Shown here one piece after another: positions 121 through 12,753 of a stretch of DNA of 12,753 nucleotides. The translations under genes were made by a program, and so were the position numbers. Positions within the stretch are counted from its first letter, which is position 1. The number at the start of each line of letters is the position of its first letter. Below the pieces are notes generated by a model. The model made no database searches. It was not told the DNA's origin and saw nothing but the letters and a program-made list of their open reading frames with translations. The stretch is from Histomonas meleagridis 2922-C6/04-290x (taxonomy: Eukaryota; Protista; Parabasalia). The stretch covers positions 1 to 12,753 of the forward strand of contig JAANOX010000160.1 of assembly GCA_020184695.1 (NCBI GenBank), written 5' to 3'.

Positions 121-2518
121 TTAATCATTGTCATCTTCTTCAACATCTTGTGTTTGATGATATATATTTTTATATTCATCTTTTAGAAAGTAACAATAAC
201 ATAATTCGCTTTCTCTACGGACTCTTTTTCTATCACATTTATCTTTTAACTGTAATTGAAAAGACCTCATTTTAATCTCATAAGGTTTATTAAATAATGC
301 ATCACTACAAAGCCAACCCTCACATAATTTATTATAATTATCACAAATAAATTGTTCTACAGTATTTCTTGATGCTTCTATTAAATCTTGTTTAGCTTCT
401 GTTACAGGTATAATTCTGGGATTATAATTATTAATATCTCTTTTTAATAAATATGTTAATAAATGATTATAAAACTCAGGAGTAAAACTGTCATACATTT
501 TTGTCCAAAAATCATGATTATTTTTATATTTACCGTTACATAATAATACGACATATCTTCTGTCATCTGATTCAATTTTAATAGGATAACTGTTATTAGT
601 AACAAATATACAATTAGCAACGTTTTTCAGAAGTTCTTCTGGGTTGATTTTTCTCGTTAATTCTAATAGTTTTATCAGTAATAATTGATTTTAAAGCATC
701 AAAATTTGCAAGTCTGTCTTCACCTACATTTTTTAATTCATTTAATACTAACAACATTTTACTTTCAACAACGCTGTTAAAGTTACCCGTTAATTCTCCT
801 ATTTGATTAATATTTTTTTCACTATATCCGCTTAATAATTCACAAATAACGTCAGTAAATGTATTTTTACCAATTCCTTGTAAACCTTTAAGAACAATAG
901 CTGTTTCAGTCTTTTTTCCGGGATTTTGTATTATATAAGATATCCAATTCAATAAATAGTTATATACATCATTATTGTTATCAGCAATTACTTCTTTAAT
1001 CATATTTAAGAAATTAGATATTATATCTATGTTTATTTTATCAACAGATTTGTATTTATAACCTTGAAATATAGAAAATATATCTTTTTCATTATTACTG
1101 TAAAATTTAATTCCTTTTACGGTCAGTTTAGATTTATAAGCTAAAAAAGCATCATATGCTGTAATATTCCTTTTACCGTCTTTCCAAAGTTTAATCATTT
1201 TAAGTAATTCTTTCATATTAGTATTTGTCATATAACCAATAACATATTTATTATTATGAATATCAAATGTTTTAATAATAAACATTAAATTATTGCTTTC
1301 TACCAATCTAATTACCTTTGATAAATCTTCAATAACGTCTTTATAACATTTATATATATGTCTTTCTGCTTTAGAACTAATATTTGTTATACTAAAATTA
1401 TCATTAAGATCAATGTTATGTATTATGTTTTCATCAGTATTATTTTTAATGAATTTCTTATAATAATCTTCATTATAAAGTTTAATTATTTTAATTAAAA
1501 CTCCGTAATGAGTTTGTAAATGCATATATCTACATTTAGCTATATCATAATTTGATTTAGCATTAGGTGTTAAATTGCAATTATTATATACATAATCATA
1601 AGCTTCATCAATAACTTCATTTGGTAAACTGTTAATTGCTTGAAACAGTACATATAATGTAATTTCTTTTGATAAAGGTCTATTATATGCATCGTTATGT
1701 ATTTCAAAACCTTCTAAACCGTGTATTAATGTTCTTGCAAATTCAACAGTAATATTATCAGAATCATTATACATTTTAACAATATCTTTAATTTCTTGAG
1801 GTTGTTCAACAGTAATTTTAATATCAAGATCCTTTAATATATCATTAACAGTTCTGATAATATGACTCTTACAATTACCTCTGATAAATTCATATGTTGA
1901 TACAGGTGATTTATGATCTTTTCTTACTTTAGATCCGGGCAGAACTACTAATGAACGTTTTGTTTCATCAACAGATGAAAATATATCAATATTATAGTCA
2001 TTTGATTCATAACACTTAATCATACGGTTATTTGTTGTATAAAATTCATCAGTATTACAATATATATGTAAACCTCCGGAAGCTGTTTTAACAATAATAT
2101 CATCATCAGATAATTTACTTAATATATTATTACGTATTTTATCTTTAGTATCGTTATCTAAAGATTTGTTAATATCAATGTCTATAACAGATAAGTTCTT
2201 TATCATATTGTTTAATAAAGCTTTGCCTGTAATAATATTGCGTCCAGATGATGATTTTTTATCAAATTTATTGTAATTATATAAATTTACAATATTTTTA
2301 CCAATACGTTGTTTTAAAGTTGAATTTATATAGTTATTTTTGTCGTGCAGCTCATTATCTACAGGACTATTATCAATCATTTAATCAAGGATTTTGTCAA
2401 TACGTTTTTCTTCGGGACTCATATCAAGCATTTTATCAAAGATTTTGTCAATACGTTTTTCGGTAGTTTCATTATCAACATCTGAGTTTGAAGTTGTCTC
2501 TGCCACTTGTTGCTTCAT
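121..2518 (-). pseudogene. Prim-Pol (bifunctional primase-polymerase) + D5-like SF3 helicase, Maverick/Polinton/NCLDV-type; disrupted, about 798 aa if repaired
   Basis: The N-terminal part has VIDID and KTASGGLHIY primase motifs. Walker A is GLQGIGKN (863-886) and Walker B is LLVLNE. Removing one base from the T5 run at 623-627 gives ENVANCIFVTNN (SF3 motif C) and DDRRY (Arg finger), in frame with ORF 121-498. An in-frame upstream segment MKQQVAETT...KRIDKILD starts at ATG 2518 and ends at TAA 2383-2381, directly before the annotated ATG at 2380. Confidence 0.9.
2381..2461 (-). repeat. 51-bp (17-aa) tandem duplication in the primase-helicase N-terminus
   Basis: GATTTTGTCAATACGTTTTTC occurs at 2390 and 2441. 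The translation is EKRIDKIFDKMLDMSPE / EKRIDKILD*MIDNSPV, and the stop aligns with Lys (AAA) in the first copy. Confidence 0.85.
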
Positions 2519-3084: not shown

Positions 3085-3623
3085 CTGTATTGAAGAAATC
3101 TTATTTTTAATTAATATTCAACGTATCAAAAGTACAGTAAATTAACCTTGAATTTCATAGATAATTGAATGTTCCCCTTGTTCCTGCTTGTACCCGGGTT
3201 CATGACATTACCTTAAGAGTTAGGGGCAAAGGGCAACTGGGCAACAGATTTTGGCAACAGGGCAACATTAACAGCGTATTTTGGGCATGTGTATACAAAC
3301 ATCCCCCTAATAATTCATGTATTTTATAGTATGTTCCTTCCTAGTTCTTATATGAGAATATATAAATATAGAAATTGATTTAATAAGCATAAAGCATTTT
3401 GCCGATTGCTTATTGCCGATTTGCCTTTTGCCCTCAACTTTTAGATGAAGTTTGTTCCCCCCAGAACATCTAGGAACAGAGAACATCATTTTAAAATATA
3501 ATTTTTGAAGTAATATGAATTATCATTATCATGTAAGGATATATGACTTCAAAATACTAACTTTTAAAAACCTAATATTTATCATTATCATGTAAGGACA
3601 CATACTTCAAAATTCAACTTTTA
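3085..3623 (+). repeat. Left terminal inverted repeat (539 bp)
   Basis: Reverse complement of 12215-12753. Manual alignment shows 11 substitutions and no indels (528/539). Begins CTGTATTGAAG. Confidence 0.97.
3520..3623 (+). repeat. Direct repeat pair (about 45 bp, period 59) at the inner end of the TIR
   Basis: TTATCATTATCATGTAAGGA..AT.ACTTCAAAAT..AACTTTTA at 3520-3566 and 3579-3623, mirrored in the right TIR. Confidence 0.85.
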
Positions 3624-3968: not shown

Positions 3969-5957
3969 ATGCAACAAGAAATAAATAATCAGCAACTTTA
4001 TCCAAGAACACAAAATCAGCAAATGTATCAAGAAATATCAAATCAACAAATCCCGCAACAAAATTTAAGTGCACAAAATTATCAACCGAGACAACAATTT
4101 TCAAATCCTCAAAATTCATATCACCAAAATTATCAACCACGAATAATACCTCAAACATATCAACAAAATCCAAATTTACAAATTTTAAATCAACAAATTC
4201 CTCAGCCAAACTCAAATCCGCAAAATTACCAGTCAAATCAAAACCCAAATCAGGCAATGCTGCAGCTGAATCCAAACCAGCCAATGCAACAGTTAAATCC
4301 GAATCAGCCAATACGACAGATAAATCCGAATCAGCCAATACGACAAATAAATCCAAATCAGCCAATACGACAGATAAATCCAAACCAGCCAATGCAACAT
4401 ATAAATCCAAATCAGCAAATGCAACAGATAAATCCAAACCAGCCAATGCAACAGTTAAATCCGAATCAGCCAATACGACAGATAAATCCGAATCAGCCAA
4501 TACAAGAAATAAATCCGAATCAGCCAATACGACAAATAAATCCAAATCAGCCAATACAAGAAATAAATCCGAATCAGCCAATACGACAAATAAATCCAAA
4601 CCAGCAAATGCAACAGATAAATCCAAATCAGCAAATGCAACAGTTAAATCCGAATCAGCCAATACGACAGATAAATCCGAATCAGCCAATACAAGAAATA
4701 AATCCGAATCAGCCAATACGACAAATAAATCCAAATCAGCCAATACGACAGATAAATCCAAACCAGCCAATGCAACATATAAATCCAAATCAGCAAATGC
4801 AACAGATAAATCCAAACCAGCCAATGCAACAGTTAAATCCGAATCAGCCAATACGACAGATAAATCCGAATCAGCCAATACAAGAAATAAATCCGAATCA
4901 GCCAATACGACAGATAAATCCAAATCAGCCAATACGACAGATAAATCCAAACCAGCCAATGCAACATATAAATCCAAATCAGCAAATGCAACAGATAAAT
5001 CCAAACCAGCCAATACGACAGATAAATCCAAATCAGCCAATACGACAGATAAATCCGAATCAGCCAATACGACAGATAAATCCAAACCAGCCAATGCATC
5101 TACAAAACATCAATCAGCAAATGTATCAACAAAATTTCAATCAGCCAATGCAACAGATAAATCCGAATCAGCCAATGTATCAGCAAAGCTTCAATCAGCC
5201 AATGCAGCAGATAAATCCGAATCCGCAAGTGCAACATCTAAGTCCAAATCAGCAAATGCAGCAGATAAATCCGAATCCACAAATGCAACATCTAAGTCCA
5301 AATCAGCAAATGTATCAGCAAAGCTTCAATCAGCAAATGCAACATCTAAGTCCAAATCCTCAAATGTATCCACAAAGCTTCAACCAGCCAATGCAGCAGA
5401 TAAATCCGAATCCGCAAATGCACCCGCAAAACATCAATCCGCAAATGTTTCATATAAGTCCAAATCCGCGAATCCGCATAATCGGTCCAAACCGACAGAA
5501 CCCTGAGATGCCACGAAAGAATAAATCGAATCGTTCACCGAACCGTGTCGAAAGCATAATATGTTACACCTTCAACAACATCTTTCTTCTCAACTGCGCA
5601 TTAGCCGGAGACGCTAACGAAGGCGACAACATCCAAAAGTTCGAGCGAATGAAACTGGTTGGCAAATCATTTCTCTACTTCAGCATGACCGAGTACCTAT
5701 GCAATCAGTTCTCTGAGCTAAATGAGGACGAACTGACGAAACTTCGCGCTGAAATACACCAAAACGATACGCTCAAAAGGTTCACGCGACAATTGGGAAT
5801 CGACAAATACATTACGTCGAACGAAACGCAGCTGCAGGATACATTTAAGGCAATTGTGGCCGCAATTTATATGGACGGAGGGCAGAAATGCGCAAAGAAA
5901 TTTGTGTTCCGTATGATGCGGAATGAAATTATACATATTGAAACAGAGAAATTATGA
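3969..5957 (+). CDS. Q/N/P-rich repeat protein with C-terminal catalytically inactive RNase III-like domain
   Basis: Intact 662-aa ORF. The C-terminal ~130 aa (about 5550-5930) match the RNase III pattern: YTFNN..LL..AL, ERMKLVGK in place of ERLEFLGD, ELTKLRA...N..L....LGIDKYI, and DTFKAIVAAIYMDGG in place of D..EA..GA.YLD.G. No dsRBD follows. Confidence 0.88.
   Translation: MQQEINNQQLYPRTQNQQMYQEISNQQIPQQNLSAQNYQPRQQFSNPQNSYHQNYQPRIIPQTYQQNPNLQILNQQIPQPNSNPQNYQSNQNPNQAMLQLNPNQPMQQLNPNQPIRQINPNQPIRQINPNQPIRQINPNQPMQHINPNQQMQQINPNQPMQQLNPNQPIRQINPNQPIQEINPNQPIRQINPNQPIQEINPNQPIRQINPNQQMQQINPNQQMQQLNPNQPIRQINPNQPIQEINPNQPIRQINPNQPIRQINPNQPMQHINPNQQMQQINPNQPMQQLNPNQPIRQINPNQPIQEINPNQPIRQINPNQPIRQINPNQPMQHINPNQQMQQINPNQPIRQINPNQPIRQINPNQPIRQINPNQPMHLQNINQQMYQQNFNQPMQQINPNQPMYQQSFNQPMQQINPNPQVQHLSPNQQMQQINPNPQMQHLSPNQQMYQQSFNQQMQHLSPNPQMYPQSFNQPMQQINPNPQMHPQNINPQMFHISPNPRIRIIGPNRQNPEMPRKNKSNRSPNRVESIICYTFNNIFLLNCALAGDANEGDNIQKFERMKLVGKSFLYFSMTEYLCNQFSELNEDELTKLRAEIHQNDTLKRFTRQLGIDKYITSNETQLQDTFKAIVAAIYMDGGQKCAKKFVFRMMRNEIIHIETEKL
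4263..5477 (+). repeat. Coding 27-bp (9-aa, QINPNQPIR-type) tandem array
   Basis: 31 core units at 4263-5099 plus 14 degenerate in-register units to 5477. A 189-bp (7-unit) higher-order repeat starts at 4641 and 4830. Confidence 0.97.
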
Positions 5958-6035: not shown

Positions 6036-6125
6036 AACATGTTTAAAATTTTATTCATATTGGTATCAGCTCTTGCTCAGCAACATGTTTAAAATTTTAT
6101 TCATATTGGTATCAGCTCTTGCTCA
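6036..6125 (+). repeat. Exact 44-bp tandem duplication (period 46)
   Basis: AACATGTTTAAAATTTTATTCATATTGGTATCAGCTCTTGCTCA at 6036-6079 and 6082-6125. Confidence 0.95.
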
Positions 6126-6225: not shown

Positions 6226-6445
6226 CGTGCTTACGCATTTTTGGAGATCTCTCGAAACTTTTCGGTACTTATATGGTTCTGCTTCTTTCCGGGAGCTCTA
6301 TCCAGTGGTGCGCTTTTCCCTTCTCTAAGTTGCTCAGGTGAAAAAATAAAAAATCCATCCGCGCTGCTGGAATTTGGTGTTTATTTACGTATATTAGCGC
6401 TCACTAGAATGAGTATGTATTGTATAATGACGCGTCCGTCTTAAC
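6226..6445 (-). other. 3' UTR of retroelement copy B
   Basis: Follows the stop at 6446 and is highly similar to 10267-10531, the segment between the stop and poly(A) of copy A. Confidence 0.7.
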
Positions 6446-7219
6446 CTATGGTAGGTTGACCCTACTATTATGATCCATATTATTGCTGGCCTTCGGGGTG
6501 ACCGTAACCGTTTTGACTGTTCGTGTCACTTTTTTCTTTTTGTTATTCTTTTTTATAGTAGAATTATTAACCATTTCTTCTTTCTTCTTCTCATTGATCG
6601 CATAGTGTGAAAGTCTTGACGGATGTTTAACTTTCATTTGTTTCCGTATTTCATCAATACTTATTCTTTTGAGGGTTGAGTTCATCTTCGTTGAGTTATC
6701 TTCTCTTTTCTTTGTTTTGTTTCTATCTATAGTAAATACCTTTTTTCCTATTATAGATTTTTGTTTATTACCTTTTTTAACTGGTTTGTTGTGATTTAAT
6801 TTATTGTACTTATTTTCTGCTTCTTTTAATGCAAATCTTATATATTTTTTTCGTTCTTCTTCATTCGTATCTGAAGGTTCTGAATTAGAAAATATATCTG
6901 AGGAATATACCTCTTCTAGTTCTTCTTCTATTTCTGGATTATAATTATCTTCATTCATAACATTAAAATTATCTTCTTCTTCTTCTTTTTCTAAATTAAT
7001 GTTCAAATTATTGTTAATATTCTTATTTTTATTTTTGTCTTTCTCGTATACTTTATAAAATATTGACATTGATTCTCTCAGTGCTGCAATAACACATCTT
7101 TTAGATACTAGATGTATCAACCTTTTATTTCCATTGAATGATCTTTTCGAATCTTTAGTTGTTTGATATGGGATGATACCTAATGATGAGATAATAATTA
7201 TATAAAAGTCTACTTTCAT
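6446..7219 (-). pseudogene. RLE C-terminus plus ~200-aa acidic-then-basic extension (copy B)
   Basis: VDFYIIIISSLGIIP...KRCVIAALRES is the RLE end, frameshifted from ORF 7243-7818. The tail is homologous to ORF 10532-11164. Confidence 0.8.
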
Positions 7220-7242
7220 ATTAAGTCAATTTTTGCATAACT

Positions 7243-7818
7243 CTATATAATCTTTATATTTATTTCCTTTTTTTTTCTTCTAATAACAAAAGTTGATTCA
7301 GAGTCGTTATCATAATTCCGAATTGTACCATAGTGGGAATTGACTTCAATTATTGTTAATCTATTGTTATTGATATATAGAATGTTCGGTTTTAATGTTT
7401 CAATAGTTTTGTGATCTTTATCTATTATTTTGGTGTTCCTGTCGAATATTATATTATTACCTTTATAATTATTTTCTTTGAGTCCTTTGATTATTTCTTC
7501 GACTATTGCATTATGTCTTTTAGTAGCTATATTTCTAATTTTTAAGCAACCATTGATTCTATGCATCAATGAATCATTTTGATTTAAGTTACATCTATTA
7601 CATTTAGGATTTATATTTAAATTATTGTTATTTAGGATTTCATTTGTCGGTAAATTATTACATCTTGCTAGAATTGCGAATTTAATGATATTATTACTTG
7701 TTGGTGCTCTAAAATCAGATAGTAAGAAATTTGTGTCAGCTGATTTATCTATTGTGCAAAAAGTATGTGCTTTAAATAATAACTTCTTAAGGTTATCTGC
7801 ATGTTTCTTTCGTGTCAT
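7243..7818 (-). pseudogene. CCHC zinc knuckle + restriction-like endonuclease fragment (copy B)
   Basis: C-x2-C-x9-H-x4-C (CNRCNLNQNDSLMHRINGC), KRHNAIV, LKPNILY...IIEVNSHYG. The catalytic PD is changed to PN. Confidence 0.88.
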
Positions 7819-8076
7819 TTTATTTGGATATTTTGTGATATCTTTTTCATTAATACATTCTTCTGTTTCTTCTTATTCTTCTTCATTTTCTTTTGTTTTT
7901 TTAATTTGATAAATAATACGATTGTTTTCTTCTAAATTTGGCTTAGAACCTACTTTTAAGTTATATAATGATTTTGTTGCTCTACAAAATGTACTATTTG
8001 TTTTACTATATGAATTTTGTATGATTTTACCCTTTTCATCAAATGGAATTCCAAAATAAGGTGAGTTTTCATTGAC

Positions 8077-8460
8077 TTAAATTTTCCTAAAATCTAATTC
8101 TTTGTACATTGTCATTCTAATAAAATTCCTAATGTTTATATCTTTTGATAATAATAAACCTGTATAAGTTCTTAATTGTAAAACATAATTTCTTTCTCTA
8201 AAAGACATTATACTTAAACCTCCTTCTTTATAATGTGTATAAAATAAATTTTTTGGTAATTTTTTCGTGTTTAATATTTGGTTTATTGATCCTATAATAA
8301 ATTCATCAAGTTTTTTAAGTTCTTTAATAGAGCATAAACCATTTAACATTTCAAAGTCTAATTGAAAAGTAATTATTCTATTAATTGCATCTATTATAAT
8401 TTTTCCATTTATCTATTGTTAATTTTCATTCTAATGTAGTTTTAACATATTTTAAATTTA
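8077..8460 (-). pseudogene. Post-RT thumb-region fragment (copy B)
   Basis: KLTID..KIIDAINRIITFQLDFEMLNG...LKKLDEFI...LPKNLFYTHYKEGGLS matches the segment that follows the RT core in RLE elements. Stops occur at 8426-8428 and 8077-8079. Confidence 0.72.
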
Positions 8461-8689
8461 AATAAAATTCTTCTGGTGTATGTATAATAATCTCATTGTT
8501 AATATCAATGTTAGTATTATTATTTAGTGGAATATTATTTTTATATTGATTATAGTTTTCTATTTTTTGATTAGTTTGTTGTGGTTCTTGTATATTTTGT
8601 CTTATTTCATCGTTGTTAGCATTTTCTTTTTTATTATTGTTTGAAGCTTTATTATCTTCTTTATTTTTATCTTGAATAAAGTTATAATT

Positions 8690-9350
8690 TCCGTTTGGTA
8701 CTATTATATCTATATCTTTGTAAATGTAATTAATTTTTGGTATAATAATATTAATATCTTTTCGTATTTCATTTATTTTCATGTTTGTAATGGTTATGTT
8801 TTTATCTTCATTGATATAATTAAATTTAGGTGTTTTAATATTAATTGTTTCATCAATAAATTTAATATCTGGTTTTGGAATATTAATCTTATTTTCTAAA
8901 AAATTGTGAAATAAGGTAATTGAATATTAAAGTCTTTATTGATTTGGTTCATTCTAAAGTTTGGAATATTAATTGTTTATTCTATAATTTTATAATTTGG
9001 TATAGTAATATTTTCTTCTACATTTTGAATATTGAATTTTGGTATTGGGACATTAACTTCGAATTCTTGTTTGAAATATTTAGGTGATAAAATATTGTTA
9101 ATTTCTTCATTTAAATTAAATTTTGGAATCTTAACATATTGATCTTTTTGTATAAAGTTAATTTTGGAAATTGATAATTTTTTGATTTCTTCGATTATTT
9201 CTATTTTTGGTAATTGAATATTTTCTTCATATTTTTCGATATTAAATTCTGGGATTATAATATCATTTTTCTTCTATTATTTTTATTAAAATGTGGTATT
9301 ATATCATCTTCTGGAAATATTTTAAAGTTTGGGATTCTAATGTTTATATC
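8690..9350 (-). repeat. Degenerate ~14-aa coding repeat (xIPKFN-like), about 15 units
   Basis: Across frameshifted frames: RIPNFK, IIPHFN, IIPEFN, QLPKIE, KIPKFN, PIPKFN, NIPNFR, NIPKPD, KTPKFN, IIPKIN, IVPNGN. Confidence 0.65.
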
Positions 9351-9459
9351 TTGTGAATTTAAATTGGGATTAGGTCTGTTATTAGGATTATCATTATCAC
9401 CTATAATAATTCCTAATGTTGGGAATTTATTGTTTTTGGATAAAAGAAATAGAAAACCA

Positions 9460-10098
9460 TCAAGAAAACAACATTTTTCTGAGCATATCACTATAATAAA
9501 CATTTGAGTTTGCGTGATCCGTGAGATGTAAACCATATTCATCAGAATTATTTAATTGTATTTTATTACAGAATGGACACTTAATATTAAAAATTATTCC
9601 TGGTTCCTCACTTTCTTCAATTTCATTATTATTAATGTTAAGTAAATTAACTATGTCTATATCTCTGAATCTCATATATGGTGCTAATTCAATTCTTCTC
9701 CCTTTATGAAACTTGTTTAAATGTATAAATAATTCTTCAACGCTTTCGTTTTGCCAAGTACAAAAAGGAAACCATGGACAAAATAATAATTCTTTTTTCA
9801 TATTATTTCGTATTGCTATCGGTAAGTTGTAGTATGTGAATCTTATTTCATTCCTCATTAAATTTATTTCATCTCCTGTTAGTGTTCTTGGTCTAAGCAT
9901 TATATCTTCTACTTCTGTATCTGTACAAGTTTCTTCATCATCTGCATAGTATTCTTGTTCATTTATTATCTTCATTGGATTTCTAATGCTATTTGTATTA
10001 GGGAGTACGATTGGTGCTGATTGTGGGTGTGTTTGGAATTTTGGTAATCGATCAGATCGAAATCTGATTTCGAAATTTTGTTCATGATCTGGACTCAT
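9460..10098 (-). pseudogene. N-terminal region of copy B ORF with two C2H2-like zinc fingers
   Basis: C-x5-C-x12-H-x4-H at 9780-9706 and C-x2-C-x13-H-x3-H at 9579-9514. The frame stays open about 45 codons upstream of ATG 10098. Confidence 0.75.
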
Positions 10099-10249
10099 AT
10101 TCTCTCTGAATGGTTCTGGACTGGTGTACGTTGTTTCTGTGTTGCTTGTTGTGTCCTCCGTTGAACTTTCTTCTGCATCTGATCGATCAGGATGGCCGGA
10201 CTCAAAAAAATGGGTTTCTTCTTGATAAATTTAGCATTATTAGGCTCTA

Positions 10250-10266
10250 TTTTTTTTTTTTTTTTT
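10250..10266 (-). other. Poly(A) tail of copy A (A17)
   Basis: T17 on the plus strand immediately 3' (minus-strand sense) of ...GCACAACACG, about 265 nt after the ORF stop. Confidence 0.75.
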
Positions 10267-10531
10267 CGTGTTGTGCATAGTTTCGAGCCTAAATGTTTAT
10301 CTCGGAGAGATAATCTGGTATGTTCCAAGATTCTCCAATGATCGTCGGAACTTATATGGTTCTGCTCCTCTCCGGGAGCTCTATCCAATGGTGCGCTTTT
10401 CCCCTCTCTAAGTTGCTCAGGTGAAAAAAATAAAAAATCCATTCCGCGCTGCTGGAATTTGGTGTTTATTTACGTGTGTTAGTGCTCATTTGGAATGAGT
10501 ATGTGTTGTATAATGACGCGTCCGTCTTAAT

Positions 10532-11164
10532 TTATTGTAGGTTAACCCTACTGTTATGATCAATGTTAGAACTGTTCTTTGGGGTGGTCGAAACCGTTTT
10601 AATAGATCGTGTCACTTTTGTTTTCTTCTTATTCTTTTTAATAGTAGAATCTTTAACTATTTCTTCTTTCTTTTTTGCATTGATCGCGTATTGCAAAAGT
10701 CTAGATGATCGTACAACTCTTGTTCGTCTTTTTAACTCGTTAATACTTTTTCCTTTAAGTATTGAGTTCATCTTCGTCAAGTTATCTTCTTTCTTCTTCT
10801 TTTTGTTCTTGTCTATAATAAAGATCTTTTCTTTCATTATAGATTTTTGTATATTATCTTCTTTGATCGGTTTATTGTACTTCCTCTCTGCTTCATTTAA
10901 TGCGAATTTCATGTATTCCTTTTGTTCTTCTTCATTGGTATCTGATGGTTCTGAGTTTGAAAAAATATCTGAAAAAGGTACTTCTTCTAATTCTTCATCT
11001 TCATCTTTATCTTCTTCTTCTTCTTCAGGATTATAATTATCTTCATCAATAACATTAAAGTCTTCTTCTTCTCTTTCTATATTGTTTATATTATTGTTAT
11101 TATTCTTATTTTTATTTTTATCTTTCTCATAAATTCTATAAAATATTAACATAGATTCTCTCAA
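10532..11164 (-). pseudogene. Acidic/basic C-terminal extension (copy A)
   Basis: Shares SDIFSNSEPSDTNEEE.K.Y..FAL.EAE.KYNK and the terminal HNSRVNL(P/Q)* with copy B. Confidence 0.8.
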
Positions 11165-11837
11165 TGCTCCAATAACACACCTTCTCGAAACTAAATGTAT
11201 TAATCTTTTTGTTTGCAGTAAAGAATTTCGTTAAATCTGTAGTAGGTTGATTCGGGATAATTCCTAATGATGAAATAATAATTATATAAAAATCTACTTC
11301 TATATTAAGTCTATTTTTTTTTTTTTTTATATAATCTCTATATTTTTCTTCTTTTTCTTTTCTTCTAATAATAAGAGTTGATTCAGAGTTGTTATCGAGA
11401 TTTCTGATTGTACCATACGGAGAATTGACTTCAATTAAAGTTAATCTATTGTTATTAATATACCATATGTCTGGTTTTAATGTTCCGATTGTTTTGTGAT
11501 TCATATCAATTACTTTTGTGTTTCTATTAAATATTATATTATTACCTTCATAATTATTTTCTTTAATTCCTTTAATTATTTCTTCTACTATTGCATTATG
11601 TCTTTTAGTAGTTAAATTTCTAATTTTTAAGCAACCATTAATTCTATGCATTAATGAATCATTTTGATTTAAATTACATCTATTGCATTTAGGATTTATA
11701 TTTGGGTTTTTCTTATTTAAGATTTCATTTGTTGGTAAATTGTTACATCTTGCTAAAATAGCGAACTTAATAATATTATTACTTGTTGGTGCTCTAAAAT
11801 TAGATAAAAAGAAGTTTGAATCAGTTGATTTATCCAT
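11136..11837 (-). pseudogene. CCHC knuckle + RLE domain (copy A), catalytic motif intact
   Basis: CNRCNLNQNDSLMHRINGC, KRHN, LKPDIWY...LIEVNSPYG...KEEKY, SSLGIIP. Frameshifted at both ends. Confidence 0.9.
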
Positions 11838-12069
11838 TGTACAGAAAGTATGTGCTTTAAATGGTAATTTCTTAAGGTTGTCTAGGTGTTTTTCGTATCA
11901 TTTTATTTAAATATTTTGTAATGTCTTTCTCATTAATAAATTCTTCTGTTTCTTCTTCCTCTTCTTTATTTTCTTTATTATCGATTTGATAGATAATACA
12001 ATTATTTTCTTCTGAGTTTGGTTTAAAACCTACTTTTAAGTTATATAATGCTTTTACCGCTCTACAAAA

Positions 12070-12214: not shown

Positions 12215-12753
12215 TAAAAGTTGAATTTTGAAGTATATGTCCTTACATGATAATGATAAATATTAGGTTTTTAAAAGTTAGTATTTTGAAGTCATATATC
12301 CTTACATGATAATGATAATTCATATTACTTCAAAAATTATATTTTAAAATGATGTTCCCTGTTCCCGGATGTTCCGGGGGGAACAAACTTCATCTAAAAG
12401 TTGAGGGCAAAAGGCAAATCGGCAATAAGCAATCGGCAAAATGCTTTATGCTTATTAAATCAATTTCTATATTTATATATTCTCATATAAGAACTAGGAA
12501 GGAACATACTATAAAATACATGAATTATTAGGGGGATGTTTGTATATATATGCCAAAAATACGCCGTTAATGTTGCCCTGTTGCCAAAATCTGTTGCCCA
12601 GTTGCCCTTTGCCCCTAACTCTTAAGGTAATGTCATGATCCCGGGTACAAACAGGAACAAGGGGAACATTCAATTATCTATGAAATTCAAGGTTAATTTA
12701 CTGTACTTTTGATACGTTGAATATTAATTAAAAATAAGATTTCTTCAATACAG
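12215..12753 (-). repeat. Right terminal inverted repeat (539 bp)
   Basis: Reverse complement of 3085-3623, ending ...CTTCAATACAG at the last base of the window. Confidence 0.97.

Follow-up and report, generated by a model that had tools for sequence, protein, structure and literature searches.

An intact parabasalid gene for an RNase III-like protein with lysine at three of four metal-ligand sites, apparently a non-cutting paralog of a small host family

An intact open reading frame of 662 codons plus stop (positions 3969–5957, plus strand), identified by translation in a 12,753-nt window of DNA (the whole stretch analysed here), encodes an RNase III-like protein in which an N/P/Q-rich repeat region is followed by one C-terminal RNase III nuclease domain with a preserved fold and lysine at three of its four metal-ligand sites. 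The gene looks like an ordinary non-cutting paralog belonging to a small host gene family rather than a weapon of a mobile element. Our preferred reading, to which we assign a probability of roughly 0.5, is that it is a chromosomal gene in a Histomonas-related parabasalid and encodes a non-catalytic RNase III subunit, whose dimer partner would be a second copy of itself or an active paralog. A role as a non-catalytic or 'poison' partner to an active RNase III is plausible for the 662-aa protein.

The frame is open over its entire 662 codons, compared with 51 and 10 stops in the other two plus-strand frames over the same interval and 7 stops per alternative frame in the RNase III domain segment alone. 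The N-terminal ~500 residues are predicted to be disordered and consist of N/P/Q-rich 9-residue repeats, encoded by a tandem array (4241–5422, plus strand) of ~44 in-frame 27-nt units with a higher-order period of 189 nt. Variation among 31 of these units (4242–5078) was 0.168 at third codon positions versus 0.036 and 0.075 at the other two, and this third-position excess indicates that the array diverged under coding constraint. Both the open codons and the pattern of repeat variation support the preferred reading. The frame stops 12 residues past the RNase III domain, and no dsRBD was found in it by translation, Pfam or NCBIfam TIGR02191. Exact look-up of the 662-aa protein and two neighbouring open reading frames returned no record in public gene calls, and Rfam and tRNA scans of the whole window were empty.

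The RNase III nuclease-fold domain (5538–5951, plus strand) was recognised by Pfam, by sequence matches in the PDB, by AlphaFold2 and by Foldseek. More specifically, the C-terminal 158-aa segment matches PF14622 (E 3.3e-15, 56.8 bits; gathering cutoff 35) and PF00636 (E 1.3e-14, 55.3 bits; gathering cutoff 27), both well beyond chance, which places the protein in the RNase III domain superfamily. Its PDB sequence matches are Drosha, Dicer and bacterial RNase III. The domain is all-helical, with helices spanning residues 20 to 157 of the segment; its AlphaFold2 model has a mean pLDDT of 90.9 and a pTM of 0.81, and Foldseek aligns it with the nuclease domains of bacterial enzymes (Campylobacter, E. 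coli, Aquifex) at a target-normalised TM of ~0.8 and an rmsd of 1.5–2.0 A. A first-pass annotation made from the letters of the DNA had called the protein a pseudo-RNase III with conserved fold residues and had proposed a check by profile and structure prediction; the Pfam scores, the confident fold model and the lysines described next bear this out.

Both catalytic signatures are degenerate. At 5643–5666 (plus strand) the codons gag cga atg aaa ctg gtt ggc aaa specify ERMKLVGK, in which the E38 site is kept and the E41 and D45 sites are lysine (both AAA), and at 5838–5849 (plus strand) gat aca ttt aag specifies DTFK in place of DxxE, with the D114 site kept and lysine (AAG) at the E117 site. 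Sequence and translation thus agree with the motifs and positions originally reported. In HMMER alignments with solved Drosha chains, ERMKLVGK aligns with ERLEFLGD and ERMEFLGD, and DTFKAIVAAIY with NCFEALIGAVY and DLLESFIAALY. Multiple alignments with 9 and with 63 other RNase III proteins confirm the three lysine sites, and in the resulting 64-sequence alignment segment positions 58, 62 and 123 are all K where E, D and E, respectively, make up 90% or more of the column. The four metal-ligand sites E41, D45, D114 and E117 read K, K, D, K, which is not the constitution of an active RNase III. The statement that only D114 remains holds among these four ligands and needs amending for a fifth acidic residue, at the E38 site, which is also kept, so that the sites E38, E41, D45, D114 and E117 read E,K,K,D,K. 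From what is generally known of metal catalysis by RNase III, lysine in place of three of the four Mg2+-holding carboxylates would leave the protein's own half-site unable to bind metal or cut RNA.

A similarity search covering 1.84 billion representatives (15 billion proteins) returned as its top three matches P0001 (42% identity), P0003 (39%) and P0009, a 118-aa metagenome fragment (44%); no ortholog above 42–44% identity was found among the 15 billion proteins searched. Further down the ranking (E 6e-11), interspersed with numerous bacterial RNase III proteins, came P0044, which was picked out by its architecture. The records of P0001 (KAH0787932.1 / XP_067775751.1, 273 aa), P0003 (KAH0788419.1) and P0044 (KAH0796011.1) are named 'ribonuclease III [Histomonas meleagridis]', and all three proteins combine a Q-rich N-terminus with a lone C-terminal RNase III domain. 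We define from these Histomonas genes a parabasalid family of Q-rich lone-domain RNase III proteins, to which the 662-aa protein belongs by its Q-rich N-terminus, single C-terminal domain, lack of a dsRBD and mutual closeness. The combination of a Q-rich region and a lone RNase III domain with no dsRBD is a previously undescribed architecture. Eighteen columns are invariant over five family members, including the signature G and an A.V.AIY.DGG block, and the family clade has a moderate bootstrap of 64% in a neighbour-joining tree. P0001, P0003 and P0044 occur in one copy each per Histomonas assembly, and their genes have ordinary neighbours (RRM proteins, an SNF2 helicase, ribosomal proteins L11 and L21e, Arf and a kinase). 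When the 158-aa domain served as query, a word-index search found nothing, a weak test as P0001 itself was missed; the same search with the P0003 domain yielded, apart from P0003, bacterial RNase III at no more than 44% identity, mostly from Planctomycetota, with no further parabasalid members. Two metagenome scans revealed relatives only at 39% identity or below, apparently of bacterial type.

The five acidic sites divide the family. The pattern is E,E,D,D,E in P0003, P0044 and P0009 and K,V,S,K,K in P0001; judged by these residues, one Histomonas genome appears to hold two active members (P0003 and P0044) and one dead member (P0001). P0003 and P0044 have the same architecture as the 662-aa protein at 36–39% identity and differ from it in retaining all five acidic residues, so that they are presumably active and represent the candidate partner type. 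P0001, the top match of the search of 1.84 billion representatives, is the closer counterpart: it is 41–42% identical over the domain, has the same architecture, is likewise predicted to be catalytically dead, and is the mutual best match of the 662-aa protein (41%). The two have in common several marks that are missing in the active members, namely CALA, RM in the signature and xTxKAIVAAIY, and the loop before the DxxE helix is shorter in both than in active members. They differ in that P0001 has lost all five acidic residues rather than three of five, has a far shorter N-terminus without the 27-nt repeat array, has a basic domain (pI 9.4 versus 6.2) and lies in an ordinary single-copy gene neighbourhood. 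In each protein lysine occupies three of the five once-acidic sites, but the two sets coincide only in part, and lysine at the E117 site is the only replacement common to both; the idea of a selected, conserved lysine triad is therefore not supported by this comparison (K,V,S,K,K versus E,K,K,D,K). Neither the neighbour-joining tree nor a count of exclusively shared residues separated grouping with the dead P0001 from grouping with the active members, so the loss of activity could be independent and recent.

Taken as a non-catalytic subunit, the protein would come from a small, lineage-specific gene family characterised by a long Q-rich low-complexity N-terminus and a single RNase III domain unaccompanied by a dsRBD. 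Dimers would form through that domain, either between two copies of the protein or, with higher probability, between the protein and a hypothetical, catalytically intact partner from its own family; the dimer-forming surface is assumed to be conserved, given that the fold-determining residues are kept. The resulting dimer would have one active site or none and might hold, nick or down-regulate the processing of structured RNA. Lysine side chains would occupy the emptied metal pocket, paired with the Glu and Asp that are still present, and the N/P/Q-rich repeats may provide multivalent assembly or localisation. Counting against the subunit reading is the location of the gene: transposons abound in the DNA around it, and inverted arms of 98% identity enclose it. 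The moderate clade support, the ambiguous placement of the protein in the tree and its slightly acidic domain count against this reading as well. A more far-reaching proposal, which we regard as speculative and improbable, is that an old, conserved dead subfamily together with active Q-rich paralogs makes up an asymmetric one-site enzyme from separate genes, acting in small-RNA or rRNA processing in the transposon-laden genomes of Histomonas-like parabasalids; less likely within that proposal is a copy in a D5-type element used against host silencing.

The left arm of the inverted repeat (3085–3623, with a weak extension to ~3713) contains a ~300-nt fold-back of reiterated motif modules (3179–3274 versus 3400–3478). 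The right arm (12215–12753, with a weak inward extension to ~12071) is 98% complementary to it and reaches the last base of the window; the arms are thus at least 539 nt long, with their outer ends beyond view. Outside the arms lies a D5-like primase-helicase gene (121–2380, minus strand; Pfam DUF5906 and VapE-like) from a virus-like repeated element. One frameshift disrupts this gene in comparison with intact relatives of ~755 aa, and it aligns as two pieces in two frames, each without an internal stop. Its product is 81% identical to metagenome proteins and 57–58% identical to Histomonas 'Poxvirus D5 protein' and T. vaginalis proteins. Between the RNase III-like gene and the right arm are two R2-like retroelement units on the minus strand. 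Unit 1 (6262–10345) is a decayed non-LTR element with a zinc finger and a restriction-like endonuclease, now in at least six open pieces with at least five interruptions, at least one of them a frameshift, and an unrecognisable RT core. Unit 2 (10345–12069) is 78–92% identical to it at a period of 4085 nt and has at least one frameshift; it comprises the 3' part only, the 5' part being missing at the junction with the right arm. AT-rich DNA, a D5-like gene, an RNase III and long inverted repeats led us to consider a giant virus or transpoviron as the source, which was rejected because the nearest named relatives of the D5-like and RNase III proteins are in parabasalid nuclear genomes and viral contigs were unmatched; a ciliate or microsporidian origin was dismissed on the same grounds.

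These surroundings bear on the suggestion, made in the first-pass annotation, that the gene is mobile-element cargo acting against silencing. On that account the 539-nt arms would be the terminal inverted repeats of a composite element, whose dead RNase III sequesters dsRNA or poisons a host Dicer-like enzyme. In its favour, trichomonads possess Argonautes, an RNase III enzyme and small RNAs with a link to transposon control (PMC7845603), and the gene does lie between two long, 98% complementary arms. The reiterated short motifs of the arms are arranged similarly to those in the inverted repeats of ~200 nt that flank D5-like genes of related contigs, a likeness of motif architecture rather than sequence, with nucleotide similarity to those contigs ending at the coding region; this resemblance to the borders of D5-like elements also counts against the cargo account. 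We consider the cargo account distinctly improbable, however, since the interval that the arms enclose has no gene for a transposase, an integrase or replication but only decayed R2-like fragments on the opposite strand, the D5-like gene lying outside. With the outer ends of the arms beyond the window, neither termini nor target-site duplications are visible; each arm is itself a module fold-back, so that the two may equal two insertions of a small non-autonomous repeat, and near-perfect long inverted repeats adjoin ordinary Histomonas genes too. No second copy of the gene or of an arm was found in viral, metagenome or prokaryote collections (viral-contig scans and a prokaryote-genome scan with the arm motif gave no match), and the closest relatives are single-copy host genes. 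The annotation had itself named single-copy host orthologs with variable residues at the lysine sites as evidence that would count against it, and the three closest relatives, although not proven to be orthologs, correspond to that description. Viral RNase III proteins are weaker Foldseek matches than cellular ones, and the best of the viral matches is a giant-virus protein (E 3.4e-06), with SPCSV RNase3 at E 0.33, which does not place the protein among viral RNase III suppressors. To our knowledge, the known suppressors of this kind retain catalytic residues and a dsRBD, unlike the 662-aa protein.

A second alternative is a duplicate, neutral or in decay: an active Q-rich RNase III gene would have been copied into transposon-rich DNA, and the copy, without a function of its own, would have lost catalytic residues to AT-biased mutation, with stops still to come. 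The density of broken repeats around it (the frameshifted D5-like gene and the decayed R2-like units) is consistent with this, as are the lack of any ortholog closer than 42–44% among 15 billion proteins and the infirm tree link to the dead Histomonas P0001. Both E-to-K changes, moreover, are single G-to-A transitions in DNA of 28% G+C (the composition of the genome of the window), and lysine is the most frequent replacement at the E41 and E117 sites in the degenerate RNase III domains that we collected; charge reversals at these sites need not have been selected, as had first been supposed. Nevertheless, we hold decay to be rather unlikely, because a long frame is open where the alternative frames are filled with stops, every fold hallmark is kept in a very confident structure model, the repeat array shows its excess of third-position variation, and the similarly dead P0001 persists intact and in single copy in two strains of Histomonas. 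Quite improbable, in our view, is an autonomous, metal-independent dsRNA clamp, that is, a homodimer whose three lysines hold dsRNA in what was once the catalytic valley, protecting or tagging it while the repeats drive condensation. The precedent invoked for it was apt: E. coli rnc70 (E117K) and Aquifex aeolicus E110K likewise replace Glu by Lys at the last metal ligand, the single Aquifex change gives stable, solved complexes with dsRNA, and these (1rc7 and 1yyo) are among the closest Foldseek matches of our domain. Three lysines at the five acidic sites of both dead members also hint that positive charge is favoured in the valley. These precedents are, however, single laboratory mutations with the dsRBD kept, whereas the 662-aa protein has three replacements and no dsRBD. 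Its domain is slightly acidic (pI 6.2, net charge about −1), which argues against strong RNA binding by the domain alone, and its lysine positions differ from those of P0001. In bacterial RNase III the loop before the DxxE helix supplies an RNA-binding motif, and in the 662-aa protein this loop is the shortest of the family. The clamp is thus weakened as an autonomous device.

Dead RNase III domains serve as partners or scaffolds in trypanosome editosomes, mitoribosomes and chloroplasts, and a dead domain in parabasalids would thus be an added lineage, not a new principle. The interest lies rather in two active members and one dead member apparently residing in one genome, and in both dead members having three lysines where the metal pocket once was, at sites that coincide only in part. 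RNA silencing is poorly understood in the repeat-dominated genomes of trichomonads; if the dead members are obligate partners of the active ones, they would offer a simple two-gene system for parabasalid RNase III function. The KREPB proteins of trypanosomes, which carry zinc-finger or PUF-type modules and not Q-rich repeats, likewise have degenerate catalytic residues in a kept RNase III fold, but they are mitochondrial and have no specific sequence relationship to the 662-aa protein, for which pairing is a proposal. Among the trypanosome editing endonucleases, degenerate KREPB4-8 pair with KREN1-3, so that one subunit is catalysis-competent (PMC9508840, PMC5648035). The mitoribosomal protein mL44 is also a dead RNase III fold employed as a structural subunit, and Foldseek matches the mitoribosome chains 9hch_c and 3j7y_c; mL44 differs in its dsRBD-like C-terminal domain and mitochondrial role, and the match of the 662-aa protein to the mL44 family PF22935 is weak (E 5.3e-05, below cutoff), so that it is not a member. 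Nor is it a bacterial class 1 RNase III, with 63.4 bits against a TIGR02191 cutoff of 166 and a match confined to model positions 4–144 of 219, or a Dicer or Drosha, which have two RNase III domains and PAZ, helicase or other modules where the 662-aa protein has one domain and otherwise low-complexity repeat. For the lone-domain architecture there is a protist precedent in EhRNaseIII of Entamoeba histolytica, a single RNase III domain without a dsRBD (PMC4521922, PMC5357909); it has no specific relationship to the 662-aa protein beyond the domain and differs in that it cleaves dsRNA, for which the 662-aa protein would lack the needed ligands.

All 662 codons of ORF 3969–5957 (+) are open, and the last 158 residues of its product score well over the gathering cutoffs of both Pfam RNase III models and also match chains of Drosha, Dicer and bacterial RNase III with solved structures. 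The signature motif ERMKLVGK (5643–5666, +) aligns residue by residue to ERLEFLGD and ERMEFLGD of Drosha, and DTFKAIVAAIY (from 5838, +) to NCFEALIGAVY and DLLESFIAALY of Drosha chains; alignments with 9 and with 63 other RNase III proteins place both motifs identically. At the five conserved acidic sites of RNase III, which in E. coli numbering are E38, E41, D45, D114 and E117 (the Aquifex equivalents D44 and E110 are named in the PDB titles of structural matches), the window protein reads E, K, K, D and K. The lysine replacements in ERMKLVGK and DTFK reported by the first-pass annotation are thus correct, but its statement that only D114 remains holds for the four metal ligands and omits E38, which is also kept. 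Its claim of a retained fold is borne out by an AlphaFold2 model of the domain computed from a 64-sequence alignment (pLDDT 90.9), which superposes on bacterial nuclease domains, including Aquifex E110K-dsRNA complexes, with a target-normalised TM of ~0.8 and an rmsd of 1.5–2.0 Å. The ORF ends 12 residues past the last helix of the domain, profile searches of the window protein detected no dsRBD, and the bacterial RNase III equivalog model is matched over its nuclease part only. The gene is intact, and its product keeps the RNase III fold, has lost three of four metal ligands and is without a dsRBD.

Upstream of the domain lie ~500 N/P/Q-rich residues, most of them in a tandem array (4241–5422, +) of ~44 in-frame 27-nt units; these encode 9-residue N/P/Q-rich repeats, and seven units make up a higher-order period of 189 nt. 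Variability among 31 sampled units is 0.168 at the third codon position versus 0.036 and 0.075 at the others, and the two alternative frames contain 51 and 10 stops, which together indicate that the array evolved as coding sequence and that the long ORF is no accident of repeats. A 46-nt unit in perfect tandem duplication (100% identity; 6036–6125) follows ~80 nt 3' of the RNase III stop codon.

A HMMER scan of the domain against 1.84 billion representative proteins returned 3111 matches, none under E 1e-30, headed by two Histomonas proteins, P0001 (KAH0787932.1/XP_067775751.1; 273 aa, 42%) and P0003 (KAH0788419.1; 354 aa, 39%), and by P0009 (44%), a 118-aa metagenome fragment on a 513-nt ENA contig. 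P0044 (KAH0796011.1; 293 aa) ranked lower (E 6e-11) amid bacterial RNase III proteins and was singled out by its architecture. P0001, P0003 and P0044, each annotated 'ribonuclease III [Histomonas meleagridis]', combine a Q-rich N-terminus with a single C-terminal RNase III domain and no dsRBD. All five acidic residues are intact in P0003, P0044 and P0009; none is left in P0001, where the sites read K, V, S, K and K. The window protein belongs to a family with both intact and dead genes in Histomonas meleagridis. The P0001, P0003 and P0044 genes occur once each in both published assemblies, which represent virulent and attenuated strains (PMC8529796), and they sit among ordinary genes (for RRM proteins, an SNF2 helicase, ribosomal proteins L11 and L21e, an Arf GTPase and a kinase). 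An RRM-domain gene directly adjoins both P0001 and the active P0003 (8701–9360 and 11344–12567 of the respective loci), an arrangement that may be coincidental or may reflect a link in function.

The window protein and P0001 are reciprocal best matches (41%) and have features in common that are absent from active family members. In a neighbour-joining tree only the whole family is supported (64%), and the count of exclusively shared residues mildly favours their pairing (5 versus at most 3), so that a single dead ancestor is no more than suggested by these sequences. The literature searched gave no description of a family with a Q-rich region, a lone RNase III domain and both active and dead members, and GenBank labels its members with the generic 'ribonuclease III' only. 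Pseudoenzymes with a dead RNase III domain are already known; the window protein adds a member in a new lineage and architecture.

The first-pass annotation took the three lysines to look selected. The triad is not conserved in P0001, which shares only the lysine at the E117 site and differs elsewhere. In a survey of 270 RNase III domains from 232 fetched proteins, a sample biased towards the window query, the acidic residue was intact in 242 (E41 site), 249 (D45 site) and 232 (E117 site); lysine was the commonest replacement at the E41 (8) and E117 (7) sites and rare at the D45 site (2). The lysine codons AAA (E41 site) and AAG (E117 site) each lie one G-to-A transition from glutamate, the favoured direction of mutation in DNA as AT-rich as the window (28.4% G+C), and the D-to-K change at the D45 site takes two steps. 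Notably, both dead members carry three lysines among the five sites, which would fit a slight bias towards positive charge where the metal pocket has been emptied. On these comparisons, the triad makes no strong case that charge reversal was selected. Lysine at the E41 site also occurs in one domain of P0002, P0006 and P0013 (Logan assemblies; 765–958 aa, signal-like N-terminus, two RNase III domains), with lysine at the D45 site too in P0002; these half-dead RNase III pairs form a second lineage, unrelated to the window family, and may be proteins that intracellular bacteria secrete.

RNase III domains work as dimers, and established enzymology implies that the window domain would be unable to bind catalytic metals or to cleave at its own half-site. 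We posit, with a probability of roughly one half, that the window protein is a non-catalytic subunit: its dead domain would form homodimers or pair with an active paralog, and the N/P/Q-rich region would give assembly or localisation. In the editing endonucleases of trypanosomes, non-catalytic RNase III subunits pair likewise (PMC9508840). By sequence the window protein is not a KREPB, mL44 or viral RNase III member. A duplicate drifting without function is unlikely, though worth weighing: both E-to-K changes are the single transitions that AT-rich DNA favours, but the repeat array has evolved as coding sequence. An autonomous dsRNA clamp is improbable, given the missing dsRBD, despite the Aquifex E110K-dsRNA complexes among the structural matches of the model.

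About as improbable is that the gene acts against silencing as cargo of a mobile element, as the first-pass annotation proposed. The gene does sit between inverted-repeat arms (3085–3623 and 12215–12753) that are 98% complementary over 539 nt, but no mobility function is encoded between them except a decayed retroelement, and the Histomonas relatives are single-copy among ordinary genes. An inverted repeat that is nearly perfect, its ~1.7-kb arms 1.8 kb apart, also lies 1 kb downstream of P0001 (JAANOX010000230.1, 11872–17037), so arrangements of this kind are common in these genomes. Nothing shows the arms to be ends of one element carrying the RNase III gene. They extend weakly to ~3713 (left) and ~12071 (right); the right arm runs to the final base of the window, with the outer ends, the true length and any target-site duplication out of view. 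Each arm contains a ~300-nt fold-back of reiterated short motifs (left: 3179–3274 versus 3400–3478) and two 59-nt-spaced direct repeats (left: 3499–3544 and 3558–3603). A third related module (2895–2979) lies between the left arm and a D5-like primase-helicase gene (121–2380, −).

The D5-like gene has 81% identity to proteins encoded by short metagenome contigs from ENA and 57–58% to Histomonas 'Poxvirus D5 protein' and Trichomonas vaginalis proteins, with one frameshift relative to intact relatives. Related metagenome contigs (2.3–3.8 kb), in which the D5-like gene stands alone between ~200-nt inverted repeats built of reiterated motifs, have the look of small elements with one gene, and their nucleotide similarity to the window is confined to the coding region. 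By motif architecture only, which resembles that of the repeats bordering these genes, the arms may be a D5-type terminal or miniature repeat present twice, in opposite orientations. Translated similarity of the window to the Histomonas locus of P0003 confirms the D5-like relationship, and Histomonas G+C (28.7%; PMC8529796) is like that of the window; taken with the RNase III relatives, these place the window in a parabasalid. D5-like genes are very abundant in metamonads, with T. vaginalis clusters of 198–350 members and remoter relatives in Monocercomonoides and Streblomastix. A 51-nt tandem duplication (84–89% identity; 2355–2456) marks the 5' end of the window gene.

The DNA right of the RNase III gene contains two decayed R2-like non-LTR units in head-to-tail order (6262–12069, −; period 4085 nt), an unusual tandem arrangement. 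Their motifs include a CCHC zinc finger and a restriction-like endonuclease, a part with matches to R2 proteins of solved structure (E 4e-4) and to Pfam zf-RVT. Unit 1 is broken into at least six open pieces, in which no RT core was recognisable, and unit 2 is a 3' portion interrupted by at least one frameshift. Each unit ends 3' in a G+C-rich stretch of 92 nt (6262–6353 and 10345–10436; 92% identity), far better conserved than the remaining unit sequence; it drew no match in Rfam and tRNA scans, and may represent a 3' UTR or part of the sequence that the element targets.
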